This document shows, in pieces, positions 1 through 43,247 of a stretch of 64,000 nucleotides of DNA. A program made the position numbers and the translations under genes. The notes beneath the pieces were generated by a model. That model was not told where the DNA came from. It made no database searches and was given only the letters and a program-made list of their open reading frames with translations. Source of the DNA: Neoechinorhynchus agilis (Eukaryota > Animalia > Acanthocephala); NCBI GenBank assembly GCA_051530055.1, contig CM121343.1, forward strand, positions 1,024,389 to 1,088,388, written 5' to 3'. Position 1 is the stretch's first letter. Each line of letters opens with the position of its first letter.

Positions 1-1330
1 GATAAACATATTTTATTAAATCGAGATATTCCGTTAGGAGGCGTCGTTAATGGTCTAAAAAGATTTTAGTTGTTTTGTATTGCGTTGCTCGGGTACGCGA
101 GATCGCTATTCGACTTCCCTGCGAAATATTTCAATAAAATGTGAACTTCAACTAGTCATTAAGAGAAAATCTTTCGGGCCGGATAAACATATTTTGTTAA
201 ATCGAGATATTTCGTTAGGAGGCTTCGTTAATCGTCTAAAAAGATTTTAGTTGTTTTGCGTGGCTAGAGTACGCGAGATCGCTATTCGACTTCCCTGCGA
301 AATATTTCAATAAAATGTGAACTTCAACTAGTCATTAAGAGAAAATCTTTCGGGCCGGATAAACATATTTTATTAAATCGAGATATTCCGCTAGGACGCG
401 TCGTTAATGGTCTAAAAAGATTTTAGTTGTTTTGTTTTGTGTGGCTTGTGTACGGGAGATCGCTATTTGACTTCCTCGCGAAGTATTTCAATAAAATGCG
501 TACTTCAAGCAATAAATAAGAGAAAATCCTTCGGGCCGGATAAAACATATTTTACTAGATCGGGATATTCCGTTAGGAGGCGTCGTTAATGGTCGAAAAA
601 GATTTTAGTTGTTTTGTATTGCTTGGCTCGGGTACGCGAGTTCGCCATTCGACTTCCTCGCGAAATATTTCAATTAAATATAGACTTCAACTAGTCATTG
701 AGAGAAAATCTTTCGGGCCGGATAAACATATTTTATTAAATCGAGATATTTCGTTAAGAGGCGTCGTTAATGGTCGAAAAAGATTTTAGTTGTTTTGTAT
801 TGCGTTGTTCGGGTACGCGAGATCGCTATTCGACTTCCTTGTGAAATATTTTAATAAAATGTGAACTTCAACTAGCAATTAAGAGAAAATCTTTCGGCCC
901 GGATAAACATATTTTATTAAATCGAGATATTTCGTAAAGCGTCGTTAATGGTCGAAAAATACTAGTTATTTTGTATTGCTTGGCTCAGAGACGCGAGATC
1001 GCTTTTCGACTTCCTCGCGAAATATTTCAATTAAATGTGGACTTCAACTAGTCATTTAGAGAAAATCTTTCGGGCGGGATAAAACATATTTTATTAAATG
1101 GAGATATTTCGTTAGGAGGCGCCGTTAATGCTGATAAAAGATTTTAGTTGTATTGTATTGCGTTGCTCGTGTACGGGAGATCGCTATTCAACTTCCTCGC
1201 GAAATATTTCAAGAAAATATGTACTTCAAGTAATCATCAACAGAAAATCCTTCGGGCCGAATAAAAATACTTTATTGAATCTAAATATTTCGCGAGACGG
1301 CGTCGTCAACCGTCTAAAAAGATTTTAGTT
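1..1330. repeat. ~177-181-bp tandem satellite, about 7.4 diverged copies, running off the left edge
   Basis: The motif gataaacatattttattaaatcgagatat recurs near 1, 182, 358, 540, 721, 902, 1078 and 1259. Each monomer contains an imperfect internal inverted repeat (gagatatttcgttaggagg vs cttcctcgcgaaatatttc). Confidence 0.95.
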
Positions 1331-1676
1331 CTATTGTGAGGCTCGGGTACTCGCTACTGCTCGTATCGTTGTATTTGCCCATTTATAATATGGACGTCAT
1401 GAACCACGACGAGTGTTGGCACTTTTTAGTAAGAACGCCGAGAAACGCTTTATTTGGACTTTCAGTCTTGGTATGTTCAATATTTTTCGAAAATTCGGAA
1501 GTTCATGGCATGCGTTATTAAACACGTATTTCTGAACTATGCGATCATTGAGAAGGATATTTGTCGACAAGAAGCATTGACCGCTCATCGTTTTTTTATA
1601 GCCACCACAAATTATGTTGAGGCTTTCGATGTCGAAATTCCGTCACAATAAATGGGACCTTATTATTTAACTAAAG

Positions 1677-4600: not shown

Positions 4601-5914
4601 TGAAGTAGTCCGGAATCGCCAATGCAACCGGATCGACAGGTTGTAAAAATGGACCAGCGTTTTCATTCGCAGAGAGGCGGTCTAAAATATCCGTTAGTCT
4701 TTCACGCATTAAATCCGGATCGACATCGACAATTTTACTGGCACCTCCAGTTGTAGAATGCGCTAAACTTCGATCAACATTCGAGCACTGGCCTGGATTT
4801 GGTGTTGTTTGACTTAATTCGAAATCGTTCAATGGCTCCTCGTGATCCTTACCGCGTTCCTTATCCTTGCAACATAGATTCTCACTAATGGATTCATCTA
4901 ACGCAGACATATTCGATGAGACGTTTCCCACGGATATGGCATTAGCGGTTGCTATTGAAGAAGATGGGCAGCCTATTGGCGCTATTGTGTTCGGCGGGCC
5001 TTGCTCGCCGGCACTACTATCCGGATCGTAAGGCAACCGTCGATGATTTTTTGTCATCAGAGGTAAGGTCCACCGACATGAATCGTCCAGACTTTGTGAA
5101 GAATGATGGCTTTGATTGAGTATCGCCGATGGAGAACCTACAATCCTAGCAATCTTATCCTTGATAAAACTAAACTTTTCAAAGAGAGAACTGAAATAAT
5201 GCTCTTGCGAAACGGCGCACTTTTCGAACAATTGTTCTTCGATCTGTTGGAAATAGCAACGAACCTCGTCCACGAAACGCGATTCAACGTCCATTTTGGA
5301 CACCAATGCGTTCACGACCTCCTCTCTAAACTCGGCAGTCATCGGTGCTTTCCATTCCTGTAAGGGATCAAGATTTATAACTCGCTGGCAAAGTTTACAT
5401 TGGTCCTGATGAGAGCATTTGCAGAAATGATCGCAAACGTTCTTTGCATATCCGCACATTGGCGAGCACGATTCGTTATTGCAAGCAAGGATATGTCGCA
5501 GAATATTGCCTGATTTACAGCATTGGGTAATGCGACATTCCATTGAGATATCGATTCCGAATCTCTTGGCTTCCGAGGTCAACTGACCGCACCGCTGTGC
5601 GTGGATCAGAGACGAAAGCATATTCACGTAAGCCGTTATTTGCTCATTAGAAGCTTCATTGGGATCCACAAAGGGATCCGAATTCGATCCACCACCGTAT
5701 TGCTCGACTGGTGGAGTTTGCTGCTGCTGCTGCTGCTGCTGTTGTTGTTGTTGTTGTTGTTGTTGCGATGCATTACTGTTAAGTGTAGTTGAGGCCAGCG
5801 ACCCGTTTATGTTTGAATCACACGACTCCATTTGTCTGAAACAGGAAAATGACGACAAGAACTCCCGTCTATCAAAAACCAAGAACGTCCTCACGCCGTC
5901 ACTTGTAGGCCCAT
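1677..5914 (-). CDS. CREBBP: CBP/p300-family histone acetyltransferase (TAZ1, divergent KIX, bromodomain, RING/PHD, HAT, ZZ, TAZ2)
   Basis: The 1421-codon ORF contains TAZ1 (LIHAQRC...HILACNNESC), a KIX-like helix bundle (EWKAPMTAEFREEVVNAL...EEQLFEK...EHYFSSLFEKF), a bromodomain (PDYFSIIKHPMDLSTI...NAFTYN), HAT motifs (VYISYLDSV, HIWACPP, GDDYIF, PYFDGDF), ZZ (YHCTVCDDYDLC) and TAZ2 (HAMDCRNANC). The tracked start at 5942 is a GTG. A more likely start is ATG 5914 (MGLQVT), then a 59-nt GTGAGG...TTTCAG intron (5894-5836) that splices in frame to the main exon. Confidence 0.95.
5718..5765 (-). repeat. (CAA)/(CAG) trinucleotide tract encoding a 16-Gln polyQ in the CBP N-terminus
   Basis: Plus strand reads ttg(ctg)7(ttg)8, in frame with the CBP ORF. 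Confidence 0.95.
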
Positions 5915-6006
5915 TGGGTAAACTATGCAATGTTTGTTGCACACATCGGTCACATGTTCAAAAAAACCACCTACGTGTACTCGATTCGTCTATTTTGTTG
6001 GCTCGA

Positions 6007-6954: not shown

Positions 6955-8345
6955 GCGGAAAATCCTCAAGAGGATCCCTAAAGGTGCCCGCTTCGAAGTC
7001 GCCACGGCCTATGCGGAGAAACTATCGCAGGCTACTGAGTGTGACTCCGACCTACCATGGATACCTTCGCGTTCCCGCGTTTGGTAATAAGTGTGGACGA
7101 CTTCACACCCGACGAAAATCTCACCACATCGATTAAAAAACGTATCATGAACTTCAAAAACATCTTTGACGATCTTTTGAAAAGAGCTCGAAAACCTTCA
7201 GCTGGCTCAGTCGCGTTTAAGCTTGGTAAACCTCGTTCAACGGGTTCTCGGGTATCTACTGAGTTAAATGATGGAGACATCCGAGGGGCTGTACGCAAGA
7301 AGCACCCTGCGCCTACAACAGCAGCGGATGCACCCTGCGCCAACAACTATCACCCGCCCTTACTACCGATCCTATTGTTCCTATTACCGACGAGGAGCTG
7401 AATCGTGGGATATTTTCTTTTGCCAACGGTTCAGGACACGGCGTCGATGGTTTACGTCCTCAACGCCTAAAAGATATGGTATCCTTCACTTCAGCTTGGA
7501 GTGGCATCTCAGTCCAACTAGCCTTTTTTTAACTTGTAAATGTATTCAATCAATCTTCATTTCTCGACAATTTACACACTCACCACCTCCCGCCGAATTC
7601 CAGCTTTTGTCCTTCCTCGACCGTCGCCATCACGCTGGCAGCATTGCCCCGTTGTACTGCTCGATTGCTTGCTTAATCAAAATCTACGATCGTTTCCTAC
7701 TCAGCTTCTATACTCCGCCTTCCCTTTACGCCCTAACGAAAAGAGAGGGTGGCCCCCGTCTGATCGCTGTTTTCAATACACTCAGGTGTTTAGTGGCCAA
7801 AATCGTTTCGAAAAGGGTTTTTTCGACTGTTGGATGCCTACTCCGCCCAGCGCAACTCGGCTGTTGCTCTCCTTGTGGAGCCGAAGCAATCGTTCACGCC
7901 TTAAGGAACTTCGTTGAAACGTCGACGGATCGATGCGCAGTTTTGAAGGTGGACTTCAAAAATGCTTTCAGTTCTCTGGAACGGAATGTCCTACTTGACG
8001 AGGGCCTACGGCGCCCCGTCACCCACTGATTTATAATCGGAGCATTATCTGGTCCCAACGCGGCCTTTAGGCCCGATGGGCTTCGCCATTGCAATCAATC
8101 CATTGGTGACGTCACTAAAATCGAACTTCAACGCGTGGTACCTGGACGACAGCACCCTGGGAGGCGACCCTCTCTGTCAGTTCTGGGTGATCTTAACCGC
8201 ATCATCGAGATCAGCTCCAAGATAGGCCTCAAGTAGAACAGCTCAAAGTGTGAATTGCTACTCCTGAACACGGACGAAACAGAAAGCTCGCAGGTACACG
8301 AGCAATTCAAGAATGTCGCTCCGGGCATCAAACAAATCAAATCTC
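6955..8345 (+). mobile_element. Degenerate CRE-clade (RLE-type) non-LTR retrotransposon: pre-RT region and RT
   Basis: Frameshifted motifs ILKRIPKGAR (from 6962), DGDIRGAVR, GAEAIVHALR, LKVDFKNAFS, VQRG-PLGPMGFAIAI and FNAWYLDD (YLDD at 8139-8150). These are typical of CRE/SLACS-like elements. Confidence 0.85.
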
Positions 8346-14489: not shown

Positions 14490-17345
14490 TACCTCTCTCT
14501 CGTCAACGTTCTCTAATCAATGAACGGTGAACGAGAATCGGCCAAGTATTTCGCTCTTCGTGGATTCGCTCTAAAGTGCTTTGAACGAGTTACTGAAACT
14601 CTAAAGGATTCTTTAATTGAAGTGATGAGCACAATTAAGGATGTATTAGCGGAGGCTATTCGGTTCGAAATGGAAGCTCTTTACAATGAACAGTTGATCG
14701 AAGTCAAGAAATGCAAAGGGTAAAAGCTAATGGCCAAAGAGACAGGCAAAGGTTTCATAGGTATCGGATAGTGAAGCGACCATCAAGGAGAATAAGGTTT
14801 TGGCAGATGCCATCAGTATGCCAAATTCGGATTGTTGGAAACGAATGGTGTTCTAAAGACTGCGAATATTTCGACATTCACTATGGACTCGACACCACCC
14901 TTAGAGGATATTCAGCATGTAGTACTTTATGATCCTAAAATTGTTGTGGAGTATGATATTGTGACTGGGATTATAGGTAACGATATGAAAAGCGAAAAGC
15001 ATTCAGCTGAAGTTACTACTAAGAAAGCTACGGTCGAACAAAAGTTGCAAGTAACACCTGAACGAGTAGTATCAAGAGCAAAAGGAGGAACTCCATCAAA
15101 ATCAATCAACCCTCCCATTCATTTCTGTAATGATACGCCTTCTCCACCCCGACCATCATCCCTCGCCGCTCTGGATTCGACCCATCGCATCATGCACTCC
15201 TCCCTAGATGATAGAAATCGCACCATATTTATTTCTGGTATGCCGGAAGCCCCTGTTACAGATCCTGTCGCCGCTGATGCACACAACCGCCACCAAATCC
15301 TTCGAATCGGTCAACTCCTTTTTCCCGACATTCACTATACTATTCCTCCCCCATTAGCAGTTATGCGCATTCCATCCAAAAATTCCTTTAACCCGAGACC
15401 ACGTCTCCTCAAAGTAACTTTTATTTCACCATTCGTAGCCTCCTGTCTTAACAGGAGACACAAACTCCTTACTTCTCAACTTTCTGTCCGTATCCATCCA
15501 CATAAGAACTCATCACGATTTCTTTCCACCGCCCCTCCAAACTCAACCCAAAACTCATCTTCCCAATTCGTCACTTTCAGCAAACACCCGAGAACATCTC
15601 CCCCCATCCCAAAAGATCGAAGAATAAGCCACTCCCCAGTTTCTTTGATTACGTGCAACTCCACCGGCGCCCGAATAACCACAAAGGTCAATCTCCCAGC
15701 CGTTCCACATTAAATACTCTCTTTTTCATGAATGAAGTAAATAATTATCTCGCTACCCCTACTCAAATACAAAGTCTCAGCCACAACCTCATATCTATCA
15801 TTACCATTTACTCAACCAAACTCAAATTTTCGAGTCGCCCCGGACTTCTCTCTTTGGGATAATTAATCGTTCTTTGTCGGCATCCCGTAACGCTTCCTCC
15901 CTTAATCCACCACCCGCAACGAACAACGCAACCCCAATCTCGCTCACTTCTTCTATCCGGTTTTCCGAAATCCAAAATTAACTTCCCCGCCGTTTTCTAC
16001 TCCAATACTCGTAGCCGCCTAGCTTACCCCGTACAACAGCAATACAGCCATCCTTCTCGGGTACTCTTCCTTCCATACATACCGCATTGACCGTTCACCA
16101 GGGGGGCTGAATTTACGTACGGATATGGCTACCATGCTCTTTATCTCTCACAGGCTCTCTACACAACCCCGATCTAGAATCCATCGCAGTACATTTCATA
16201 GCTCCTCTTAGAAACTGTCTCAGAAAATTCACCATTGCTAGCGTCTATCGCCCTCCGGCCTCCCGACCTGGGTCCTCCTTGCTCCAAATTGACTCTATGG
16301 TGGAGCTCATAAACTCCACAAATTCGCACCATTTCTTAATTGCAGGGCACTTCAATAATCTATTTCCTCTTCTACCCTTCGCCGAGTTGCGTCAGTTTAT
16401 TGACTTCCCAACTCGTCTTGACGCTCACCTCGACAAAGCGTTCACAAATATCGACGTCTATTCACCCGCCTCTAAACTCTTCCCCGCAAACTCTGACCGT
16501 TCCTCTGTCCTTATAACTCCCTCCACCCACCTCAGCGTATGAAATCCCCCCGTTTCCCCCGATCCAAAATTTTATAAAAGTGTTCAACTCTATCAACCGC
16601 ACATCCCACTCTGACAACACAAATAACCCTTCCTTGGCCATGTCCTCACTAATCTTAATCATAGAAAATTCCATAGCTTCGGCAACTCCCAAGAAATTCA
16701 TTAGGATCTTCAACAGCGACCCTCCAAGGATAACCCCACTCTGATACCTCTACGAAGGCAAGCTTCTAAGACCCATCGTAATAACTCCCCAGACTCTACA
16801 TGTTTACAAAAAGCACTTACTTACAAAATACTTATCGCCCGCAAAAACTTCCTATCCTTAAAAATTCGATCAAGTGGCAACTCTGCATGATGGCGGACCC
16901 TCAAGGACTCTCTTTGTCTACGCAACCTCGATCCCTTCCATAATTTGTCCTCCACTGAATTAAAACAAGTTATAGATTCCATTAATCAGAACCTCTGCAC
17001 TGACTAAATTTACACTCTCTGGCAACATCAGTCTCCACACAATATTTCAAGCCCACACCTGAAAATTTTGTTAACCTGTCGATACTCCCCCCCAGTCTCG
17101 TCATACGAAGTACTAAAGTATCTCAAAAAATTACCTTAAAATTCGTCCTCTCAATCCGAAATTCCAAACTGGGCTCTTCGCTGCATCATCCCCGAACTTC
17201 TCGACCATTTTACCCACATTATAAACCTCAGCTTTTTATATGGTATCTACCCCTCTTGCCTGAAAACTGCCATAGTTATACTCGTTTCAAAAAAGGGCAT
17301 CCTATTTCGGCCGAATCATTCCATCAAATTTCCATTCTACTCGCT
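14490..17345 (+). mobile_element. Degenerate APE-type LINE (CR1/L2-like): ORF1, apurinic endonuclease and RT N-terminus
   Basis: ORF1-like RNRTIFISGMPE...PRPRLLKVTF (14832-15713); APE-like IASVYRPP, LIAGHFN, FPTRLDAHLDKAFTN, NSDRSSVL; RT start IPNWALR...FTHIINLSF...AIVIP near 17160-17340. Many stops and frameshifts. Confidence 0.85.
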
Positions 17346-21907: not shown

Positions 21908-21945
21908 TTGCTTGTAAGTTTTTAAATATTCCCACTTACAAGTAA

Positions 21946-22974: not shown

Positions 22975-24400
22975 TACTCATCACCGCTTGCTTATTGATT
23001 GCTAATCAAAGAGGATATTTGAAAAAGTTAATCATAAGAAACAAATGTGATAAATCTTTTGGGCCACTCATCGCCGCTTATCTCCTTCCCCCCAACGCTT
23101 ATTGATTGCTAATAAAAGTTAATTTTTGAAAAAGTAAGCATAAGAGACAAATCATATAATTTTTTAGGTTGCTTATCACCGCTTATCTCTCCAGCCCTAC
23201 AGCTTTTTGATTGCTAATCAAAGTTAATTTTTGAAATAGTAGCCATAAGAGACAAATCTGATAAATCTTTTGGGCCACTCATCGCCACTTATCTCTCCAG
23301 CCCCCCACAGCTTATTGGTTGCTAATCAAAGTTAATATTTGAAATAGTGGTCTTAAGAAACAAATCTGATAAATCTTTTAGGCTACTCATCGCTGACTAT
23401 CTCTCAACTCCCCCCACAGCTTATTGGTTGCTAATCAAAGAGGATCTTTGAAAAAGTAGTCATAAGAGACAAATGCAATAAATCTTTTAAGCTACTCATC
23501 GCTGCTTATCTCCACTCCCCACAGCTTATTGATTGCTAATCAAAGAGGATCTTTGAAATAGTGGTCTTAAGAAACAAATCTGATAAATCTTTTAGGCTAC
23601 TCATCGCTGATTATCTCTCAACTCCCCAATGCTTATTGATTGCTAATCAAAGAGGATCTTTGAAAAAGTAGTCATAAGAAACAAATCTGATAAATCTTTT
23701 AGGCTACTCATCGCTGCTTATCTCTCCACTCCTCAATGCTTATTGATTGTTAATCAAAGAGGATCTTTGAAAAAGTAGTCATAAGAGACAAATGCAATAA
23801 ATCTTTTAAGCTACTCATCGCCGCTTATCTCCACTCCCCAATGCTTATTGATTTCTAATCAAAGAGGATCTTTGAAAAAGTAGTCATAAGAAACAAATCT
23901 GATAAATCTTTTAGGCTACTCATCGCTGCTTATCTCTCCACTCCTCAATGCTTATTGATTGTTAATCAAAGAGGATCTTTGAAAAAGTAGTCATAAGAGA
24001 CAAATGCAATAAATCTTTTAAGCTACTCATCGCCGCTTATCTCCACTCCCCAATGCTTATTGATTTCTAATCAAAGAGGATCTTTGAAAAAGTAGTCATA
24101 AGAGACAAATCTGATAAATCTTTTAGGCTACTCATCGCTGCTTATCTCTCCACTCCTCAATGCTTATTGATTGCTAATCAAAGAGGATCTTTGAAAAAGT
24201 AGTCATAAGAGACAAATCTGATAAATCTTTTAGGCTACTCATCGCCGCTTATCTCTCCACTCCCCAATGCTTATTTATTGCTAATCAAAGAGGATCTTTG
24301 AAAAAGTAGTCATAAGAAACAAATCCGATAAATCTTTTAAGCTACTCATCGCCGCTTATCTCCACTCCCCAATGCTTATTTATTGCTAAAGAAAGTCAGC
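22975..24400. repeat. ~106-107-bp tandem repeat, about 13 copies, more diverged at the left end
   Basis: ctaatcaaagaggatctttgaaaaagtagtcataag recurs near 23002, 23213, 23322, 23431, 23537, 23643, 23751, 23855, 23962, 24067, 24174 and 24281. Confidence 0.95.
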
Positions 24401-25329
24401 TTTTTGAAAATCTATTCATAGGCGACTAAGCTCTCGCCTTCGTGGAGTTTTACGTCTTTGACACATACCATAGAACGCAAAAGTTAAATTAAATCTAGAG
24501 ACATCATGTTTTGTAAAAAACCCTCTTAAGCGTACTTAATATGGTCGTAGAATGGGAATTCAGACGTAAAAGTATTATTTTATCTTATGAAGTGTTGAAG
24601 TGAGCATCCTTCACCGTTTGGTTCAGGGATCCAAGTGATTTTATGCGTTTCCGTGACCTTGATCGTTAGGTTGTGTGTCCAAGGAAAATAATCATCCGTA
24701 TAGGTGATGTTCAATTTAAAAACTGAATAAAAAGTATTAATGATTATTATTTTTAATTCACAAAGCAGTTTATGACTTTGTTAGAATCGAAAATGCGTAA
24801 GAACATCCACTTGTTTGCCTTAGTCCATTGAGAGAACCGTTTTCCATAGTCATTAAAGACATTGTCTATAATGTGATGCCACATGAACTCGCGAGTTAGC
24901 GTGGAGGAGCGGCCTTAAGTGAAGCAGTCACTGTGACGATGAAAAGAAATGAGTTTAGGCCCGTCGAAGTTCTGCGCTACTAATTCTTCGCTTGCTTGGA
25001 GGCATTTGTAATGCTTGTAGAAAAATGTAGGACGTTGGCTGCATCGCGAAATAAACCTTTTTGTATTTTATGCGTCAGTTCAATGCTCGTTGGTTGATGT
25101 TTAATTGACTAACAGAGTTTTACCATCTTTATTTCTGTACAAATATGTTTACATGCAACAGGCTTATAAATTGAAGCGTTTATAGGTCAATACAACAACA
25201 TTTTCGCCGTTCATTTCAGATTATATCCCTTTGATAGTTTTCCACGCCCCCGTTTCCAAGCGAAGCTGGCACTACACTTGCCGAGCTCCTCAGTTATTCA
25301 ATCTCTTTATATCATTTTATACTCGTGGA

Positions 25330-26398
25330 ATGTTCTCGAACCACACAAGATTGGGCATCATATACTTCACTCTCGCTACTATCTATTTTCTATGGTTTGC
25401 ACTTGCAGTTGGATTCGGAATCGAACATGCCATCGTCTTTTCAGTCGTGACGGCTCTTTTCTGGTTTGGACGTCCAACAAGGAAACTTCTGGCTTCAATT
25501 GCACCCTACATACTATATGCAGGACTCTACGACTCAATGAAAGCAATTCCGAACTATGACATAAGTTATTTGCGAATAAGAGAAATTTATGACATTGAAA
25601 AGAGATTTTTCGGTGTCCAAATCAGCGACTTAGTTGAAAACGCAACTATTGCCAACTACAAGACAGTGCGCAAAGTCACTTTAAATGAATTATCAAGGGT
25701 GTACTATCATCCAATTCCAATGGTAATATGTGGACTCTTCTACATCAATTGGATTTCCGTTCCGGCTAGTTTTGCCATCTACCTGTATTTGACATACGGG
25801 GGCAAATGGAATCGATCAGACAGTGGCTTGATTCCAATCAAGACCAAACGATGTGCTTACCTGAAATTTAGTCTTCATTTCCTTCTGGTCAATATAGCGG
25901 GATTTATAATCTATTACTGTTATCCTGCGGCACCCCCGTGGTACATCGAAATACACGGCTTCAAAAAACATCTAGATGTTCCTGGGCACGCGGGAAGTTT
26001 ACTTTCGCGCAGTGGTATTGTATCGAGAGTTCATTTCCTTTTACAATACCATTGTGTGAGATTTAATCAAAGTGGACAACCTGACAGGCTTGTCGATATT
26101 TCAGCGCTTGTATTCCAATAACCGATTAGTATTTGCATCGATGCCATCGCTACATGCCGCGTATCCAGTAGTGTGCTTGATAACTGCAATCACAATAAGA
26201 AAGTTCATACTTTCAATCATTTTCGGCATTTTCGCAGTCGGAATTTGGCTATCGGCCGTCTACAGCGGTCACCATTATGTTATCGATGTGATTGCTGGAA
26301 TTGCATGTGCAGTCCTCACATACCTCCTTCTGTTAGCACTACTAACCGTCAAAACCTTCACGAAGTATTATGAAGTGTATTTAAAATACATAAGTTGA
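25330..26398 (+). CDS. Aur1/IPC-synthase-like PAP2-superfamily membrane enzyme (inositol phosphoceramide synthase-like), about 336 aa, one inferred intron at about 26015-26072
   Basis: ATG 25330; multiple hydrophobic helices; motifs YPAAPPWY, FASMPSLHAAY and YSGHHYVIDV with the catalytic His/His/Asp intact. ORFs 25231-26121 and 26072-26398 join in frame by removing a phase-1 GT...AG segment (donor 26015 or 26012, acceptor AG 26071-26072). Confidence 0.85.
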
Positions 26399-27465
26399 TC
26401 GCCTTTCGCTTATTTCAAATTAATTCACATGTTCAATCTAGTACAGAATAAAATTCTCTTTTGATATGCAACGCCTTTTAGTCCGCAAACTGGGTTAGTC
26501 CAATTTGAATATCTGACATCTCGAACTCAAATTGTTTTAATGTCAGTATGGATCAATTAATTAGTGGAAAACGTTATAATGCCGTTTTGGATTTTCTTAG
26601 AAATTATAATCGGTAATTTGGGTAATAGGGGCACTGTCGTCAAACATAAGACCAAGTTATCCATTTATGTCTTGGATTATTATCTTCGGCGGAAAATATA
26701 CTTTCTTTTGGTAGTTCCAATTGTGAATGCGTCCAGTTTTTTTCCAACTGTGATACGCATTCACACTTGAAAAAACTTGCAAGCAATGATAGGTGTGGAT
26801 AATGTCGGAATTATCCGACGAAATATTGGCAATAAATCTCTGAATTTACATCCGGGTGTGTATAACTACCAAAATAAATTATCCGTTTATAAAAGCCTTG
26901 CATGAAAGATTTTATATTTAGGATTTAAAGGAGCAACGAATCTTAATCCTTTCATGTACTATATCTTAAAAACTCAAGGTCAAAATACTTCCTTTCAATA
27001 GAAACTCATTTACTAACTTACCGACGATTTCCGGGGAGCTCACTGATTCTCATCTCACTCTCGAAAAACCAAGATTAAATTGTGCACTGTACGTCCTCTG
27101 ATCCAATAAATGTTGTTACTGTTAACTATAGGCAAGTGAAATTTATAACTTCGGATTGGTTAGTAGCCTTCTCCAAGTTTGGATTTATATTAGCAACCTG
27201 TGTGATACAGAAAACAAAGGAAATAAAAGGTTTTCATGCAATCGTTCGGTTTAGTGAATACTTAAAATATATTTCCGGGTGCCATAAAGTTAAAATTTAC
27301 TTTAAGCTAATCGAGTTTACAACAGGTGATTAATACATTTTTATACAACAATTTAATCTATCTTACTATAAAACATACCATAATCCCGGATAAATGATTG
27401 AAATATTTCGCCATCCTCTTTCTAAATATTTCAAATCAATAAAATCTTATTAACATTTACCGGTT

Positions 27466-27800
27466 ACACACACAACAACAAAACGTTTCAACAATCACCA
27501 CCGTCCACGAAGAAAAGACATCGCTCTCCCCTCAGTGGTCGCGACCACACTCGCTGCGTTTCCTCTTTGGATCGCGAGACCAATGTTTTAGAGCAGGAAG
27601 GCACCGGCTCTTGTATTTCCTGTCTTGACCTGGAGTCTACTCGATAACTACTCCGTAAATCTAAGTGCCGAGCTACCGAGCGCATCAAGAGTCTCCACTC
27701 CAAAGGGTATAAAAACGTGAGGCCTACTTAATTCTTTATATTTCGCAACCTTTCGGTCCTCCGCGGCAGTAGCCGCTCCCCCTGGGGACTGCAGCGCAAA
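27466..27800 (-). mobile_element. 3' terminus of a CRE-clade non-LTR retrotransposon with a short (TTG)/(TG) tail
   Basis: Minus frame AATAAEDRKVAKYKEL...FIPFGVETL...RL...TGNTRAGAFL...IGLAIQRGNAASV (two in-frame stops) matches the CRE C-terminus. It is followed by gttttgttgttgtgtgtgt. Confidence 0.8.
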
Positions 27801-27912
27801 CCTATGTTTTATCCGGGGGGATTATGATCACCACATCTCTATCATCCCGAAGGATTTTCTCTTCATGATAAATCCTCATGTCCTTCACTGAAAACATTTC
27901 ATGAAGATTTAT

Positions 27913-29992
27913 ATAAACACGTTTTATTTATGTAAAAAATGCAGGATCCACACACTTGTCAGCATCTATCTTTGCTGAAGGTGTATGGATGACGGATGTT
28001 GAGGTAAGGGAGGTGGGACTTATTTTTGAAGGGGTGTTGATGTGGGATCGGAGGCTTTGTAAACGAGATGACAGATTAAGTCTTTCCTTGTTCTCCGGTT
28101 ATTAAGGAAAGATTGGGCTTGGGGGAAGAAAGATTTTTGGTAGAGGGTGGTACGAGCGATGGGTGGATGAAAAAGGTTGGGGTTACGGGTAACAAGAAGT
28201 TCCACATTGGATATATTGTTCGCGGTTGGAGAGGAAAGAGGAAATCCAAGCGAGTTGCCAAGTTGGGAGGCCAAAGGAAGCACATGATTGGAGGAGAATG
28301 GAATGATCTACTGACTCGAACGCCCTGGAAATATCCAGTTGCACGAGACGGACGGTTGATGCTGGACTGGAATCTAAACTGCGCACAAGCGCAACGTAAA
28401 TGCAGAGGAGGGCATCAGAACAAGAGTAATTGTGACGGAAAGCAAATTGGGAAGGGGAGATGTTTTTGAGGAAAAAGGAAAGTTGGCGGGTTTTAAAACA
28501 TTTTTCTAAGATTTTAGAGAAAGGTGAGAGGATAGAGATGGGACGAAAGGGTGCAGGGGAAATCGGCTTATCGTATTTGGGTAAGGGACGACACGGGCTT
28601 CCTTAAGACACGATGGAAAAGAGCCCAGTAGAAAACTAAGGTTCGTTATGTGCGTTAGAGAATCGATAAGTTCCGGGATGATGAAACGAATGGCCCAATT
28701 TGGGATAGTCGAATTAGGGGAAGAATGGCGGGGCAGGTGTTTAAGGACGTTGGGACAATGGATGGGAGGTTTGGGGAGGACAGAGGTTTTTATTCATGGA
28801 GTTAAGGATTGAGAGGAGATCAGATTTGGGGAGAGATGCGAAGGGGGTGGATCTAGGAGGGGTAAGCAGGATTATAAACACGTTTTATTTATGTAAAAAA
28901 TGCAGGATCCACACACTTGCCAGCATCTATATTTGATAAACGGTGTGTGGATGACGGATATTGAAGGCAAGGGAGGTGGGACCTGTTTTTGAGGGGGTGT
29001 TGATGTGGGATCGGAGGCTTTAGCTTTGGTGACCTGGATTTGAAGGGTTTTTAGAAAAGGCGAGAAAGAGACCTTCATCGCAGATTCTATTGGATTTAAC
29101 AAAGAGCCCATTGCAATCGAAGAGTCGGTACCAAAGATGGTAGAGCGGTTTTGCGTAATAAGAGAATTGACACATGCAGTAAAGGAGTGGGTATGATGAT
29201 CACACTTATCCCAGACAACGTAGGGGTCGGAAAAAGAACGTTTTTGAGGTGATGTGGGGGAGAGAAGCATGGGACAATGGTCAGACGAGGCGATCGGGGG
29301 AAGTTTGGTAGTGCACAAGTATTGCCTGATGTTTAAGAAAATTTTATCAAGGGGGAGGAGAAGTGTATGGGGAAAGTAACGAGTTAGGAAAGATGAGAGA
29401 GCGAGGGCGGGATCGGCAATTTGTTAAAATCGCCCAATATGATGAAGTGATCTGAGGAAGAGGAAAGTAGGTCAGTAAATAGGTGGTCTATGTGTTGAAG
29501 TGCGTTAGGGATGTTTGAGGAAGGAGGGCGATAAAGGCCAGCGATAGAGATCTCACGTTTGCCATTACGGAGGGGGAGATGAAGTAGGATGTGAAGCCAT
29601 TCAAGATCGTCGCAGATGAAAAGGTAGGGTGAAGAGCAATGGTAAGGGAGAGAGACGCGGATAAAGATCGATATTCCTCCCCCGTTTCGGAAGTCCCTTG
29701 TGAGGTGAAAAGCTTGAAATTTTGGAAGGAAGGCAGATAATTTGCTATGGGGTGAGAGCCATGTTTTCGTAATTACAAGGATGTCGGCGTTGCAAGAAGA
29801 AGCAACTACATGGAGCTCATCCAGTTTGGGGAGGAGGCTGCGGATGTTAGAATAAAAGATTATTGGAAAGGGATGTTTAGAAGGGACATGAGGGGTGGAC
29901 ACTGACGGAGAGGGTTGAAGCTGCGCAGAGAGAGAAGGGATGGGCGTTGATCGATGGGGTAGTTCGGGAGTAAGGGATTCGTGGGTGGACAA
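27913..29992 (-). mobile_element. Two tandem, internally deleted APE-type LINE copies sharing one 3' UTR
   Basis: APE motifs FYSNIRSLLPKLDEL, GGGISIFIR, LYRPP, ILGDFN and SSDHCPML (29992-29200). RT motifs FRPISILSPFSKILEK and LDISRAFESVDH (28560-28180). The 3' end with AATAAA is duplicated at 27913-28058 and 28874-29021. Confidence 0.85.
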
Positions 29993-30187: not shown

Positions 30188-33100
30188 TTACATTGCAAAA
30201 GTAAGTTCATCGATGGATCTGTCCTGCTGAAGTCGCCCCAGCATCTTATCTGGATGAACACTTTCACTGCGACTATTTCTATCGATCATCGGTGACAAAA
30301 TCTTTGAATCGGTCGGAGAATTTTCACCATTTGAATGATCTTCGTCGTGCATGCTTTTCGGATGCGAGCTAGTGCTTCTTCTTAGGCTTTCGGTAGTATT
30401 TGCCATGGTAGTTGGGCGATACCCGGAATGGCGGTAATTGAACCTTTGTCGTTCAGACATCGAGGTGAGCCTTCTTGCACATTGACTGGCATTGGTTTGT
30501 GATTGATTGATGTAGGGCGACGGGGCAGATTCGCGGATTATTCTTTTAGTTCTAATCGAAGATGGAGTAGGTGACAATTGACTACTATTTGAGGCAAAAG
30601 CCGAGCTAACGCTTTCTTCTAAGAAAGTTTGAAGGGTTTTGAAAGGCGAAAATTAAAGCGAACCTTGTTCAACTGCGTTCAATCGAGCGTATTGTCCACT
30701 CAATGATGATTTTGAACCATATCGACAATAGCCAGACTTCCTACTTTCGCCATAGTTTTTCAAAAGTGGCATGATCATGACACTTGAATCGTGTCGATTG
30801 GTGTACTTGATCAAATCATCGTATACATCAAGACTACCCAACTCTCCATCACGTTCGTTATTGTAAGTACTGCTACTGAAATGACTTGATCAACTGAGAT
30901 TGAAACGTTTCAATTGAACAATGTAATGCATACCGGTAATAGCATAAGAACACAGAAGTGGCTATAATTGACAAGCAAATCACGGCAACGACCGATCCAA
31001 AAAACAGATAGATCACATCGTTACTTTGGCTGCTTTGAGTAGCAGCTACATGAGCTTCAGAATCTCGATTGTGGGTTAACAAGCTCGCGTTGATAGAAAC
31101 TAGGGAGCTGGGTATACCAGAGTACGATACTTCGACTGTAAAATAAATTCCATCTCGTGTTTTCAGTAATAACTTTGGAGGGGATCGGCACCAATACACA
31201 GTGCCGTATTCGGCGATGCACAGATTGTTAGTTAGAAGAGAAGATGAAGATTGTATTCGATAAACCAACCTAGGCCTTTGACTGGCAAAAACCTTTACCT
31301 GGCCAAGAATTGAATGTCGTGCTGTATTGTTTCCTATCTCGAAACAATATGATCGCCGATCAAAAGTGATTGGGTGAAGTATGTTTATGATTACATCGTA
31401 GGTAACATAAGACTAAGATAGTTTGTAAATTTTGGAGCTTACTTAACAATTCACCTTGGCAAGGTCAAATATCAACACTTTACATTTTACAGAATCACCA
31501 CTAGGGACGTTGTGATTTCGCCTTATTAACAAACGCGGATTTCGCGATCTAAAATAGACGATAAAAGATGAAGTTATTGATAGCAATAAATCGCACCCCT
31601 GTTCGGACAAGCGCAGGAACATCTCACCAGAGTTGTTGCATGATATCGTGATTGACGCGTTTGAAATATCCAAACTTTCTGTAAGCACCAAATCTCCCAG
31701 ATATGTGAAATCATCCGTAGCATAGGTTTGTATGAGTTTTTCGCCTGCTTTCACGACATCGAAATGCAGTACTGATAGATCGTTGTTAATGGTTGAATTT
31801 GTTCGTTTGATGGTCAACAAAGCTCTTTCACACATCAGATTACTTGCACAGGCCTTCAATACTTGTTTACATTTTAAAATCGATAGAGAAACTCACCTTC
31901 AAGAAAAAACTTGATTTTAAACGCGGATATCGCCCATTATACTTTAAAATTCCCGTTTGTGGATCGATAGAGAAAGGGCATGAAGCACTCGGGTCTAGTT
32001 ACATGTGATTAAATTTTTAACAATCAGAATAGAACATCAGCTAACCTATAATTCTATAAGAGATGGGGAGATCATCCGAAAAGGAAGCGTCCATGAATGC
32101 GCGAATCGATCCCGATATCGGTGTAACGATGGAACCCTTTGATCCATTATTTTTCCGAAGTAGGATTGAAAACTTACTTTTGGTGTATTTTCACTTAATT
32201 CAACGATATAGGAAACTCTTGAGAAGGTGGGTTTTTTCACTTGCTGACTATCGACGATTGCGATATTCAAAGTGGATATTGATGAAAGGGAATTTGTTCC
32301 GTGATCCTAATTTTGAGAATAAATCAAAATGTTTTGAGTATGCATATATTAATTGATCACCTTAGCTTTAAGATCAAGTCTTATTCTACTTTCTTTTACA
32401 GCATCCAACCGCTTTGTTAAAAGAAGATTACCTCTGTTATGTCCCGTCATTTTGAATTTAAAATACGACTGTGATTATAAAAATGAGTTCAAAACAATGT
32501 AACACGGACGTACAGAAAAGTCATCATTTTCGTTGACTTGAATCGTAACGTTTCCATTGTCGAACGAATCATCATCCATGGCTTGTATATTGTGGATAAT
32601 TACTGTGCCAGGATATGAATCCTAGATAAAAACAATTAAGAAAAAGCGCCCGTAAAAGTATTAACAATTACCCTTTTAACATTGACGAAGTAGGGCACGT
32701 TAACGAGGTACGGCGCATTATCATTGACATCGATGATTTGAAGCGATATGTTATGAACGGTCTTGATAGTTTTTGGTTTAGTTCAAAGCCTTTCAACAAA
32801 AAAAACAAACGGTTCTTCTTGTTGGATTTACTTCACATCGGATAGTAAGTATAAAAGGATTCGGTTTTCCCTTTTCCATCCAAGCCTCGTAATCCAAGCG
32901 TTTCGATAAGATAAGTCTTTTTGAATTAATTTGAAAATAACTATCTACACTGTCATTTTGTCCAGCTCGTATTAGATCGTAGGAAACCAGTGGTTCGTCC
33001 CCATGAAAGAGCAATTTACCTACAGGCCGACCTGGATGAGTATTAGACGAGATTTAAATTTGGCGAAGCGTTTATTACCTGGCTTAAGATCTTCGTACAA

Positions 33101-34848: not shown

Positions 34849-37404
34849 TTAGATGAACAATTCTCCACGATCGCACATACTAGCGTCAATTAATCTCCAT
34901 GATGCCATTGGGTCAGCAATCGATTGGTCTCTGCAAAGTGCCCAAACATGCATAACCCTTAGAAGTTTGTCCTTTTCGCCTTCTACTACATTTCCGTGTA
35001 GATCCGTCACGTAGTGGACTTGCTGAGTATTGAACATGACGACTACGACGGGCCCCTGTTCAAGGATCTTAGCCGCTAAGTACTGTGGGCAATCAGTGTT
35101 TCTAGAACTATTCGAAATCACCACTTCAACGAACCTCGATATCAGTTATATCAACCACTCGTAGTACGTACTTTAGGTTCAGCGCTTGTGCTTGTTTAAT
35201 CGGTTGTATAAGTACATTGTAGACCTTCAATCGGCGTATAATGTTCAACAGTCAAGAATACTTACTGCTTCATGGCACCAATCTCTAAGAACCTCGAGAT
35301 CACCTTGGGACAGTGACTAAACAGAACAGTCAGTGGGGATGCAAGGGTGAACGATAAACCTACTCCAATAATATTTGGCGCAATATCGGTTTGGACCTGC
35401 TTAATACACTGATTCTCCACGCAAGACTATAGAATGTGCTGTATAAGATGATCTTTAATACAAGCGGAAATAATTTTGCCCCTGAAGTTGCAGCAAGGCT
35501 TCGTTGGTTGTCACAACAAAACATGATACTTAAAACTGCGCACTCGTTTCATTGAAGAATTTCTACGACAACGGTCATCCGATGGCATGAGAAATGCTCA
35601 ATGAGCGTATGAATAAACGTTTAAACCATATTGAATATACAAGATACACAAATAAGCCAATGTTTTACAATCAAAAAACTTTTAGTAGTGAAATTGCAAA
35701 CGCTTGGTTTGTTAAAAGTGAACGTTTTAGTCCTTTGGCGTTTAAGACGATATCACTAATTTTACTATACGGTTTATTGCCCAACGATCAGAGAATAATT
35801 GGAGAATGATATCAACCCAACGAACACTAAGTCGGCTTCTAAATGCAAAATTATTAAAAAAACGCACGTAAACTAGGACCGGTAGACCATTGAAAATCGT
35901 TGTGGTTTTGTTTAAGCTGGACGCTAATTTTTTAGTTCATCGGGTGCATTTAGTTTGTTAAAAAGCTTGTTCAAGCGCGCTATAAATGTCAAAAACACAT
36001 CGCAATTAGTTGAGAAAAATTAAAACAGGACAAGCCAAGTCTAATTTGTAAGATATAAGCAATGAAATTTTTACAATTTTGCTCCTAGAATACCAATCAC
36101 AATACTGAATTGCTTGTTAAGTAACACCATAAACACTTTTCTGTGTGGCTATATCTCAAAATGAAGTCAATAGTTTAACTACCAAAAAACAACAAGAAGC
36201 GGTGCATTGAGAGTCAATGAGTAAGGAAAGTGAGGACATTGAACTTTGGATCTATTTTCATGATCTCAGTAAGGGCTTCAGATGCTTCCGTTTGTGAGAA
36301 TGCTCGTCCTATTTTGCAAAACATTAGGCTATATGCGAAAAAAACTCACCAAATAAGTCGGAAGCGAAGTTAGTCAGTGACCTGGCCACCCGTACCGCTA
36401 GATTATTGCTATCATCGTATCTTGCTTTTAGTTCGAAAATTTCTAAATTCGGTAGCTATGAATACCAGTAGTCGACCATTAATACTTTCTGTTCATATAA
36501 GCACTATTTTCCTTGAAAGTTTGCCAACTTTGATGCCAGCTGGAGTCCTTATGAAGGACGATATTTTTTGAATCACTAAAAACCCACATCTAAGCGGTTT
36601 AATAAATTATCTTGTGACCTACTTGTTAGGCGCAACTGCTTCTGGTTCAGTTGCGATTCCATTTGATGTGACGGTTCGTTTTCTAAGTTTGGCTGGCGCC
36701 TTATAGAAATTTATCGACTTAATATTGGTGACCTCATCAATCTCGTCCTTAACCGAACCCAAACGTGATGAAACGGACTTGAATGCATCACTCTTTGAGA
36801 ATTCATTACTCTTCTTGGAGATCGCATCTACAGTCCTAGCAGCGCGATCGGTTACTTGTTTCGAAAATTGAGAAGCTTGTTTCCCAAATTCACTCCCCTT
36901 CAGAACTTCGCCCAAGATTCCTACTTTCTCCTTCAAATATTGGCTACTTTTCTTAGTCTCATCTTCAAATGATTTCTAAATTTACAAAATCAATAAAATT
37001 CCGTGCTCGCAGTCATGCTCACTCACATATTTCTTCTTAGCTTCTAGCAAAGCATCAGACGTCTCTAATTTACGAGCCTCCTCCCGGAATTTACGGATGT
37101 TCTCCTATAAATAACCATTAAAATCAGACGCATCAATCGACAAACGCCAGCCTCTATTTCTTTATTTTTAGAAAATTCCTCTTTGATATTGTCGATCAAT
37201 GATGATACAAATCCCTTGTCCTTATTCGATGATCCACTTAGTTTGCATGACTTTATGAAAAGAATCGAATGAAAGCAAAGGAAACACTCTAACCGGAACG
37301 ATTATGTTTACACGTTTGAAATCCTGAATCCAACGGCTAAAAATGGACGTTACACAAAACGATCGATTTTGCACAAGTCTCAGCAGCGTCAGACGTTGCA
37401 TCAT
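34849..37404 (-). CDS. TIMM44: Mitochondrial import inner membrane translocase subunit Tim44, multi-exon
   Basis: Arg-rich presequence-like N-terminus (ATG 37404); FIDNIKEEFSKNKE; ENIRKFREEARKLETSDAL; YKAPAKLRKR; GDLEVLRDWCHEA; C-terminus EQGPVVVVMFNTQQ...VVEGEKDK...VWALCRDQ...WRL. Confidence 0.93.
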
Positions 37405-39934: not shown

Positions 39935-40667
39935 CTATTCGGTCTTTGGGTTTATCTTGTTCGCCAGTGCCATAGCAGGCACTTCTGCAGCCAACCAAGG
40001 AGCAAGCTAAAATTTTAGAAGTTGAACAGTATATTAAAGTAAGTGCGGGTAAATTACGCCAATGGCAAGTGCATGCGCTATTCCATATTTAGGAGCATTC
40101 CTCGCCCATAGAGGAATCAAATGATCATCTATACAAATTCGGCCGCCTCTATGGATAAAAAATTAAGCAATCGTGGTGGGAAAGACTTTGAAATGCCACC
40201 CACCTATACATTTTGGCGGTTTTTCCATCCAGTTGTGGGAGTTTCATCTCAGGAGGCGCCATTGGATACGAGGCTGGGATCTTCTTGGTCCATGAGGAAA
40301 TATACTACCTCAAGACCTACGAACCTCAATACATAAATCGAACTCGTATTTCCTCATGTCCTGCATGTGCCAGCACTTCCCTTTCCACAACGTTCCTTCC
40401 TTATTGCTCTTCAATGTGAACCAATCGGTGCCAGCCATTTTATTAGTTTTCACGTACTATAGAAAGTATTGCGAGAGAGCTCCAGAAAAAATAACATACC
40501 CCAATTAATGCAGTGTACTCCTCTTTCAATCTATTTGCCCATTTCTCGATTCCATCCTGAGGACCGCTTCGATCCGACATCGCCATGATGGTAGCGACCT
40601 TCGAACCAACATCGGATTCATATCGATTTGTCCTAGAATCATTGACGCCCGAATTCATGATCTCCAT
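39935..40667 (-). CDS. UFC1: Ufm1-conjugating enzyme 1, five exons
   Basis: Exons encode GPQD...[32 protein letters not shown]...[60 protein letters not shown] and [10 protein letters not shown], separated by short GT-AG introns. Stop TAG at 39935-39937. Confidence 0.95.
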
Positions 40668-40879: not shown

Positions 40880-41800
40880 TCATTTGAAATATTTCGTAAA
40901 CGTTTTCCCTTACCTCTTCAGTTATATCTACAAATTAAACTAAAAGTCAAAATTGGACTATAGGCATGGATCCGTGTCTAACGTTTTGGTTTTGTTTTGT
41001 CAAGGAGTTTCGGAAGTACTAGCGTGTGATTCGTTTTGTTACTCTCCATGGTTACATTCCCTGTGATGTATATTGCCTCCATTACCAATCTCCTCCGTAA
41101 ATTAGCCTCAGGCTGTATTATTGAGATGCCCGTGTCCGAAGTCCACACGGTGTTTTTCCTTCTCCTGATGATTGGGGATCGCTGAGGAACCATCAAACCT
41201 CCTGCACGCCTGCTTGTGTTGTGCTAGTCTTTTGGACAATCCTTGCATCGTTTGTCTCACATAGATACGATCACATTCGATGCATGGGATTTTATATACT
41301 CCATTGTGGCATTCTCTACTGTTCTTCTTCTTGAGCAATCCGTGGTAGTTGGACCTTTGTTGTACGAGATTCTTAGGTTCGGATATTTAACCTTCAGTCC
41401 ATTTAGCTTCTTACTTGCTATATACCTCACGAACTTAAGAGATGCATACATTTTGGGTTCGGCTGTCTTTGTCTCTTTTACTCGTTCTAGACTCTAGATT
41501 CGTTGCATGCTCCGCTTGATTATCCACCATGAATATCCTCTTGATTCACGCTCTTGTGTTATGTTGCGATATTCTTGATTGAGCGTGCTCACTTTTGACG
41601 TTATTTGTTTGACTCGTTGGAAGTAAGAAGTTACTGTGGATAGTTTGTGTTGCATGGGCTGGTGACTGGTCCATACTGGGGGTACCCAAGTTAGGTTTAC
41701 GGTACATCGACGTTTCGACTGTACCTCTTTTTGGCCGATCCATGAAAGAGATGTGACCATTTTCCTCTTGCTCAACTGACCATTGAATATCACCATTTAC
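40880..41800 (-). mobile_element. Penelope-like element 3' part: RT thumb and GIY-YIG endonuclease, frameshifted
   Basis: ETSMYRKP...; GVYKIPCIECDRIYVRQT...KRLAQH; EANLRRRLVMEAIYI (ORFs 41108-41338 and 40978-41196). Confidence 0.9.
40882..40927 (-). ncRNA. Degenerate minimal hammerhead about 50 nt downstream of the PLE endonuclease stop
   Basis: Minus strand reads CUGAAGA G GUAAG-GGAAAACG-UUUAC GAA AUAU U. Core, stem II and stem III match the other copies, but stem I pairs poorly. Confidence 0.55.
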
Positions 41801-43247
41801 TTCGCTAGTGACTGGTCCATACTGGGGGTCTCCAAGTTAGTTTTATGGTACATCAACGTTTCGACTGTGCATCTTTTTGCCCGATCCATGAAAGAGATGT
41901 GACCATTTTCCTCTTGCTCAACTGACCATTGAATATCACTACTTAATTCGCTGGTGACTGGTCCATACTGGGAGTCCCGAAGGTAAGTTAGTTTTATGGT
42001 ACATCGACGTTTCGACTGTACCTCTTTTTGCCCGATCCATGAAAGAGATGTGACCATTTTACTCTTGCTCAACTGACCATTGAATATCACCATTTACTTC
42101 GCTAGTGACTGGTCCATACTGGGAGTCCCGAAGGTAAGTTAGTTTTATGGTACATCGACGTTTCGACTGTACCTCTTTTTGCCCGATCCATGAAAGAGAT
42201 GTGACCATTTTACTCTTGCTCAACTGACCATTGAATATCACCATTTACTTCGCTAGTGACTGGTCCATACTGGGAGTCCCGAAGGTAAGTTAGTTTTATG
42301 GTACATCGACGTTTCGACTGTACCTCTTTTTGCCCGATCCATGAAAGAGATGTGACCATTTTACTCTTGCTCAACTGACCATTGAATATCACCATTTACT
42401 TCGCTAGTGACTGGTCCATACTGGGAGTCCCGAAGGTAAGTTAGTTTTATGGTACATCGACGTTTCGACTGTACCTCTTTTTGCCCGATCCATGAAAGAG
42501 ATGTGACCATTTTACTCTTGCTCAACTGACCATTGAATATCACCATTTACTTCGCTAGTGACTGGTCCATACTGGGACCGAAGGTGAGTTAGGTTTATGG
42601 TACATCGACGTTTCGACTGTACCTCTTTGCCCGATACATGACAGAGATGTAACCATTTTCCTCTTGCTCAACTTACCATTGAATATCACCACTTACTTCG
42701 CTGGTGACTGGTCCATACTGGGAGTCCCGAAGGTAAGTTAGTTTTATGGTACATCTTCGTTTCGACTGTACCTCTTTTTGCCCAATCCATGAAAGAGATG
42801 TGACCATTTTCTTCTTGCTCAACTACCGTTGAACATCACTACTTACTTCGCTGGTGACTCGTCCATACTGGGAGTCCCGAAGGTAAGTTAGGTTTATGGT
42901 ACATCAACGTTTCGACTGTACCACTTTTTGCCCGATCCATGAAAGAGACGTGACCATTTTTCTCTTTCTCGACTGACCATTTGATATCACTACTTACTTC
43001 GCTGGTGACTGGTCCATACTGGGGGTCTCCAAGGTGAGTTAGGTTTATGGTACATCAACGTTTCGACTATACCTCTTTTCGCCCGATCCATGAAAGAGAT
43101 GGGACCATTTTCCTCTTGCTCAACTGGCCATTGAATATCACTACTTAATTCGCTAGTGACTGGTCCATACCGGGGGTCTCCAAGGTAAGTTAGTTTTATG
43201 GCACATCGACGTTTCGACTGTACATCTTTTTGCCCGATCCATGAAAG
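41760..43247 (-). repeat. 151-bp tandem repeat (about 10 copies) derived from the Penelope RT thumb region
   Basis: ORFs at 42059, 42210 and 42361 are spaced 151 bp apart. The unit encodes DIQWSVEQEENGHISFMD...ETSMY(R/H)K and runs directly into unique PLE sequence at about 41750. Confidence 0.92.

Follow-up and report, generated by a model that had tools for sequence, protein, structure and literature searches.

Can an animal own a gene for an inositol-phosphoceramide (IPC) synthase of bacterial type? Common teaching holds that animals make sphingomyelin or ceramide-phosphoethanolamine (CPE), and to our knowledge IPC is regarded as absent from Metazoa. The enzyme that makes it, IPC synthase, counts as one of fungi, plants and protozoa and for this reason serves as a selective drug target. 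The question is raised by a 64,000-nt stretch of the genome of the acanthocephalan Neoechinorhynchus agilis (hereafter the window, numbered from its first letter). An initial annotation of this window had reported an intact multi-TM protein of about 336 amino acids with three IPC synthase motifs among animal genes, and had proposed its horizontal transfer from bacteria. We found the protein to be intact, with all three motifs and a length of 334 amino acids. Its coding sequence lies in two blocks:

25330 to 25997, plus strand: coding block 1 (amino acids 1-223), in frame 1 from the ATG at 25330, matching NF052609 with 127.3 bits
26062 to 26398, plus strand: coding block 2 (amino acids 224-334 and stop), in frame 2, with the stop codon at 26396-26398 and the PSLH and HHYVID motifs

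Joined at 25997->26062, as in the RNA contigs of three runs, these blocks form a mature coding sequence of 1005 nt for a multi-pass membrane protein. Block 1 holds YDSM (at amino acid 67) and PAAPPWY (amino acids 199-205, nt 25924-25944), and block 2 holds PSLH (amino acids 251-254, nt 26144-26155) and HHYVID (amino acids 293-298, nt 26270-26287). The Pfam profile PAP2_3 (PF14378), a check suggested in the initial annotation, matched exon 2 with 52.7 bits, where 27 is the cutoff; on its own, exon 1 reached 19.6 bits over profile positions 56-95. Pfam PAP2 also matched (32.3 bits). A further match was to NF052609, the model of bacterial phosphoinositol dihydroceramide synthase, which aligned with block 1 over profile positions 11-189 (127.3 bits) and with block 2 over positions 197-305 (108.5 bits), so that both blocks together span about the full length of this 305-position model. 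The summed score of about 236 bits falls short of the curated equivalog cutoff (480 bits), and the same holds for the bacterial members P0005, P0262, P0410 and P0125. Other animal copies scored 232-289 bits. As environmental Bacteroidota members, P0125 among them, scored 258-322 bits, the NF052609 cutoff separates close kin of Bacteroides and not function.

The N-terminal half had been described as resembling Bacteroidetes proteins such as BT_1522 and not fungal Aur1. Our analysis bore this out. Block 1 alone obtained its 127 bits on NF052609, and its best non-self matches were bacterial-looking proteins of about 305 amino acids with 35-39% identity, together with a fragment from P. laevis; the family profile scored just 93 bits on yeast AUR1, and in the tree described below the gene fell inside Bacteroidota. 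Two in-frame insertions in block 1, of about 13 and 17-18 amino acids, are specific to N. agilis and missing from homologues. Both lie in stretches between hydrophobic segments and remain in the mRNA. The insertion of 17-18 amino acids (TYGGKWNRSDSGLIPIKT, window positions 25790-25850) has a short inverted repeat (TGGAATC...GATTCCA) and may be what is left of a small hairpin element that was exonised.

The contig that hosts the gene is 7.8 Mb long and also carries CBP/p300 and Tim44. Within the window, the neighbouring animal genes were:

1677 to 5942, minus strand: CBP/p300 homologue, an open reading frame of 1421 amino acids (Pfam HAT_KAT11, Bromodomain, zf-TAZ, ZZ, RING_CBP-p300 and PHD_P300)
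34849 to 35124, minus strand: Tim44 exon (Pfam Tim44, 50.4 bits)
40443 to 40667, minus strand: UFC1-like open reading frame, judged by eye

Four neighbours had been named previously, CBP, TIMM44, UFC1 and a cadherin. CBP/p300 and Tim44 were recovered by Pfam and a UFC1-like frame by eye; the cadherin was not confirmed, as the region read as such (two open reading frames, 30873-31859, minus strand) gave no Pfam match at E<0.01.

We mapped three RNA runs and one whole-genome shotgun (WGS) run onto positions 24000-28000. The WGS reads tiled 24000-26600 unbroken at about 10-20x, and the depth over the gene equalled that of its flanks. The initial annotation had conceded that reads failing to link the gene to the flanking animal genes would speak for a chimera; the short DNA reads ran continuously across the gene and its immediate flanks. 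The WGS sample differs from the likely source of the assembly. Its 151-nt reads cover the gene and the immediate flanks and do not span to the neighbour genes, so the link to animal genes 8-19 kb away is that of the assembly. By tblastn, no homologue of PIP synthase, PgpA, GtrA or MIPS was present in the whole window; a single gene was thus retained and not an operon. The absence of PI(P) synthase, PgpA and MIPS neighbours is expected of a lone transferred gene in an animal that has its own phosphatidylinositol (PI). Base composition was uninformative as a signal of origin, with a GC3 of 0.44 in the gene, a bacterial median of 0.45 and overlapping host values.

Repeat families lie just downstream of the gene (26680-26830 and 27480-28000), where WGS depth climbed from about 12x to 40-300x. 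They show many variant joints and inverted junctions, and the first of them holds a AACTTGCAAGCA motif that is one letter off the transcript leader described below. Elsewhere in the window, a tandem array of units of about 150 nt (41494-42822, minus strand) contains near-identical open reading frames of about 61 amino acids (MVIFNGQLSKSKMVTSLSWIGQKEVQSKRR...).

Is the gene expressed as an animal gene? Words sampled from the locus were present to 93% in each of four RNA runs and to 100% in the DNA run. Each of the three mapped RNA runs gave one contig of about 1200 nt that matched 25220-25997 and 26062-26462/6 with 0 mismatches, at a word depth of 92-129. RNA depth was 0 over the upstream flank (24000-25205); past the 3' end it dropped within about 100 nt and stayed at a few percent of the gene level until the repeats near 27350. 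This pattern at both flanks indicates a discrete transcript of about 1.2 kb, to which the following features belong:

25214 to 25219, plus strand: 3' splice acceptor tttcag; the genome match of the RNA contigs begins at 25220
25220 to 25329, plus strand: 5' UTR, matched by the RNA contigs from 25220 and ending before the first ATG of the frame at 25330
26399 to 26466, plus strand: 3' UTR, with AATAAA at 26447-26452; transcripts stop at 26462-26466
21909 to 21934, minus strand: genomic copy of the leader (23/24 letters) at the apex of a hairpin repeat, the only exact copy in the window

According to the ends of the RNA contigs, the transcript terminates 10-14 nt past AATAAA. At the 5' end, 16-24 letters that are non-genomic at that place precede 25220 in all three contigs, ending in ...AAAAACTTACAAGCA. 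This leader is joined directly after tttcag, and in the three contigs it ends in ...GAATATTTAAAAACTTACAAGCA. Because its genomic copy lies on the minus strand, that copy cannot be a cis 5' exon of the gene. We consider the leader ending in ...GAATATTTAAAAACTTACAAGCA a candidate spliced leader of the N. agilis genome; its 3' half resembles what we take to be the bdelloid spliced leader (...ACAACUUACCAAGAG). Hammerhead ribozymes had been noted before in the hairpin repeat that carries the leader copy. The RNA contigs of three runs displayed an intron, a leader at an acceptor and a poly(A) signal, as is typical of eukaryotic expression.

The intron itself is unusual in its structure:

25998 to 26061, plus strand: intervening sequence of 64 nt, missing exactly in RNA; it slides up to 26002-26065
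26003 to 26022, plus strand: 5' arm of a hairpin with 20 bp, by RNA fold
26042 to 26061, plus strand: 3' arm of the hairpin, with several G-U pairs

The joint 25997->26062 occurred in one contig per RNA run, in all three runs, at the word depth given above. Owing to a TTTA direct repeat, the cut position slides by 4 nt, and none of the five possible end pairs (TT..GA, TT..AT, TA..TT, AC..TT, CT..TA) is GT-AG, GC-AG or AT-AC. Models of a GT-AG intron at 25997-26060, 26012-26072 or 25997-26072 were all excluded by the joint seen in RNA. The hairpin folds with a dG of -29.5 kcal/mol (z -5.1), a value that none of 200 shuffles reached. As several stem pairs are G-U, the arms pair on the sense strand only. 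The spliced product HAGSLIKVDNL aligned with homologues free of gaps; across the joint the mature coding sequence reads ...HAGSLIKVDNLTGLSIF..., and its 17-residue spacing is that of every homologue. The empty site was absent from all DNA reads of the WGS run from the other sample (about 12x), and removal therefore apparently takes place at the RNA level. Whole-worm DNA gave no sign of DNA elimination.

To what extent do other animals share the gene? In our searches, which included an exhaustive HMMER search over 1.84 billion representatives, we recovered animal copies from acanthocephalans, bdelloid rotifers and a spider mite only, and not the broad, vertically inherited metazoan clade that had been named beforehand as the outcome speaking against transfer. 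In P. laevis the orthologue is complete but split after ...NVFASM by a segment of about 8.3 kb with a reverse-transcriptase-like open reading frame (WNNJ02000732.1). This segment is bounded at 7440-7460 and 15725-15745 and has a terminal inverted repeat of 17 nt with one G/A mismatch, along with a GTCAATG direct repeat; no GT-AG reading of it is possible. With these features, a transposon-like class of non-canonical introns seems present in a second acanthocephalan. The exhaustive search also added full-length transcripts from two SRA runs, P0114 and P0287, which are acanthocephalan-like and group with P. laevis, so that the reading frame is intact in four acanthocephalan data sets. Between these two transcripts, dN/dS in the enzyme domain was 0.09 at a dS of 0.42, compared with 0.61 in the C-terminal tail. 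The enzyme domain is under strong purifying selection.

Among bdelloids, the exhaustive search gave Didymodactylos carnosus, and a further search showed that all sampled bdelloids carry the gene: D. carnosus, Adineta vaga, A. ricciae, A. steineri and Rotaria (four named, two unnamed). These copies belong to the same bacterial-type family and are nuclear animal genes, but they differ from the worm gene by an N-terminal extension of about 90-200 amino acids, are about 40-44% identical to the worm protein and have no intron position in common with it. Adineta vaga has two loci, on chromosomes of 15-18 Mb; its copy has three introns at other positions and adjoins FBF1 and CCDC39. To test for one origin of the syndermatan copies, we looked for shared intron positions or synteny and found none, the intron of P. 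laevis also lying at a different site. The copy of the mite Tetranychus urticae (XP_015792594, annotated AUR1) is likewise nuclear and of the same bacterial-type family, but stems from a different clade of Bacteroidota. Automatic database annotations already call the bdelloid and mite proteins Aur1-like. The fragmentary matches P0137, P0143, P0144, P0151, P0120, P0123, P0128, P0163 and P0164 were rejected as eukaryotic copies; they read as bacterial, some with frameshifted tails.

Among species-representative genomes of GTDB, at least 597 stretches matched, and the best 80 of these were almost all from Bacteroidota. We placed the animal copies in a maximum-likelihood tree of 71 sequences (IQ-TREE, LG+C20). 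The acanthocephalans formed one clade (support 100/96), with N. agilis as sister to P. laevis and the two transcripts, and the bdelloids another (100/99). Both lay inside a clade (95/94) with Arcicella, other Cytophagales and Saprospiraceae/Lewinellaceae. The mite copy fell into a separate supported clade with Chitinophagaceae, Sphingobacteriaceae and Cytophagaceae. In AU tests, acanthocephalans and bdelloids as one clade were not rejected (p 0.294), whereas all animals as one clade were (p 0.007). Taken with the placement of mite and syndermatan copies, these tests mean that animals acquired such a gene at least twice. Sister to the worm clade was P0125 (88/88), but the end branches are long (1.06 for the worm clade, 1.64 for P0125), which leaves the exact donor uncertain. 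On its contig (metagenome Ga0672992_0021525, 1010-3613), PgpA, GtrA, CDP-OH_P_transf and PAP2_3 genes stand in a row, together with GldM. This cluster is a Bacteroidota inositol-lipid operon of the BT_1522-1526 kind.

The phylogeny asked for in the initial annotation therefore nests the gene inside the diversity of Bacteroidota, and the proposed transfer of a bacterial gene is supported. What has to be corrected is its age and range: the transfer is old and shared, and neither recent nor specific to this species. Within Acanthocephala the gene is vertically inherited. Judging from the sequences, the transfer predates the split of Eoacanthocephala and Palaeacanthocephala, and it may predate that of acanthocephalans and bdelloids.

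What does the enzyme make? In Bacteroides thetaiotaomicron, deletion and complementation showed that BT_1522 is required for phosphoinositol-dihydroceramide, with PI and other sphingolipids unchanged (Heaver et al. 2022, PMC9246714). The worm protein belongs to this family (NF052609) over its full length (profile 11-305) and shares its YDSM, PAAPPWY, PSLH and HHY..D motifs and a core of about 305 amino acids. It differs from bacterial members by its identity of about 35-39%, its score under the equivalog cutoff and the two extra loop insertions. Its gene differs from BT_1522 in being a nuclear animal gene: it has an intron, its transcript bears a 5' leader and a poly(A) signal, and operon partners are missing. 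Among the bacterial relatives, PIP synthase and PgpA genes are close neighbours, an arrangement also found in the BT_1522-1526 cluster; a CDP-alcohol phosphatidyltransferase gene lay within 3 kb in 54 of the 80 bacterial loci (the best 80 of at least 597).

Homology also extends to the solved yeast IPC synthase AUR1 (PDB 9vj3, 9ivc), which the family profile matched with 93 bits (E 1.6e-25) over the PAP2_3 fold region and with PAAPPWY, PSLH and HHY..D aligned. Yeast and other fungal Aur1 are far more distant from the worm family than the bacterial enzymes are, but would presumably have their reaction in common with the worm protein: PI and ceramide give IPC and diacylglycerol (DAG). Yeast Aur1 works with a Kei1 subunit; nothing suggests a Kei1-like partner for the worm protein. 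Both PI and ceramide occur in the secretory pathway of animals, so that a single gene would suffice for IPC. Given that the gene is intact, we think it rather probable that its product makes IPC, with both the inositol-sphingolipid product and the catalytic activity predicted from sequence.

Several other readings of these data have to be weighed. Bacterial contamination or an assembly chimera would mean that the gene is not in the worm genome. The closest non-animal homologues are indeed bacterial, and the GC3 is near the bacterial median, although near host genes too. We nevertheless regard this reading as exceedingly improbable, because the gene sits between CBP/p300 and Tim44 on a multi-megabase contig, WGS reads of a second sample cover gene and flanks evenly, and its RNA shows a removed intron, a leader at an AG acceptor and AATAAA. 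Orthologues in P. laevis and Adineta vaga moreover have their own, different introns, the latter beside animal genes. Hardly more credible is descent from an ancient eukaryotic gene that passed down vertically and disappeared from almost every animal lineage. In its favour, the family shares ancestry with yeast AUR1, and fungi, plants and protists commonly have Aur1 homologues. However, animal copies score 230-320 bits on the bacterial model versus 93 bits for the profile on AUR1, they nest in supported bacterial clades, and the mite and syndermatan copies do so in different ones, with a single animal clade rejected by the AU test. The gene is thus a horizontally acquired, domesticated nuclear animal gene: it nests among its donors, reads link it to its flanks, and it is expressed in the eukaryotic way.

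More weight is due to a reading that accepts the acquired gene and questions its product. The enzyme could use another head-group donor or acceptor (PE, PC, PG or a different lipid) or be a lipid phosphatase, and no inositol sphingolipid would then arise. Sphingomyelin/CPE synthases and lipid phosphatases are members of the PAP2 superfamily with the same His-His-Asp motifs, the PAP2 model also matches, the identity to bacterial enzymes of the characterised type is just 35-39% and the two loop insertions are novel. This reading is unlikely in our view, though it keeps a real share of the probability: homology to the PI-dihydroceramide synthase model is full-length and includes the subfamily-specific N-terminal half, the nearest bacterial relative sits in an inositol-lipid operon, and the domain is under strong purifying selection. 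As for the intron, the 64 nt might instead be an insertion polymorphism, with the RNA derived from worms with an insert-free allele and transcripts of the insert allele degraded. A hairpin with a TTTA direct repeat looks like a MITE with its target-site duplication, an empty site would read identically to the spliced product, and RNA and DNA come from different samples. Yet the assembly has the insert, and the DNA run from another sample contains no empty-site read at about 12x. In all four RNA runs the contigs contain a 0.93 share of the words sampled, the three mapped runs lack precisely these 64 nt and their contigs otherwise show 0 mismatches to the assembly, and the G-U pairs of the stem allow pairing in sense RNA only. 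We consider such a polymorphism improbable, and removal of the hairpin from RNA the better reading.

An expressed set of non-metazoan genes is known from Syndermata. In P. laevis, 4.8% of proteins are candidates for horizontal gene transfer (HGT; Mauer et al. 2020, PMC7310846), and among the foreign transcripts of bdelloids some belong to 'sphingolipid metabolism' (Boschetti et al. 2012, PMC3499245). Our gene is an instance of the same phenomenon; these two papers give counts and pathway tables, and their main texts name no IPC synthase. The genome and mRNA-seq of N. agilis were described in 2025 (PMC12690905), and neither this paper nor those on P. laevis mention inositol or ceramide. Our literature search found no paper on an IPC synthase in rotifers, acanthocephalans or mites, and none on its transfer to animals. 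Within the literature searched, the gene in animals is undescribed; bulk HGT in the clade was already known.

Taken as a whole, we regard it as likely that a Bacteroidota gene for an Aur1-type PI-(dihydro)ceramide synthase was transferred to an acanthocephalan ancestor and is now an ordinary nuclear gene, whose enzyme most likely makes IPC. In the course of events that we propose, the phosphoinositol-(dihydro)ceramide synthase gene arrived before the Eoacanthocephala/Palaeacanthocephala split and was domesticated; it is transcribed as an mRNA of about 1.2 kb, whose 5' leader is joined at an AG acceptor and whose end follows AATAAA. A lineage-specific, hairpin-closed non-GT-AG intron has been gained and is removed exactly. 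The resulting enzyme of 334 amino acids, which has kept the His-His-Asp phosphotransferase motifs, would take phosphoinositol from phosphatidylinositol that the worm already has and place it on ceramide, giving inositol-phosphoceramide and diacylglycerol. Our data show the sequence of the gene, its integration, expression and processing, its place in the tree and the purifying selection on it; catalysis and the lipid made are predicted. A wider version, which we offer tentatively and think more doubtful, has one Bacteroidota IPC synthase transferred into the ancestor of bdelloids and acanthocephalans and kept under purifying selection, so that the whole clade would make inositol-phosphoceramide, with spider mites having acquired the enzyme independently.

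For RNA processing, the locus offers direct transcript evidence on two points: a hairpin-closed non-GT-AG intron is cut out exactly, and a 5' leader is attached at an AG acceptor. For lipid biology, an expressed bacterial-type IPC synthase in acanthocephalans, bdelloids and spider mites would, if our reading is true, change the picture of animal sphingolipids. It would also provide a concrete case of one bacterial gene captured at least twice by animals, and its retention throughout a clade together with independent acquisition by a mite would point to a recurrent adaptive value. As IPC is a membrane lipid not known from animals and is probably made by this enzyme, the protein may be a parasite-specific drug target. 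In the control of acanthocephalans that are pests of fish, it would be a candidate target without a counterpart in the vertebrate host.
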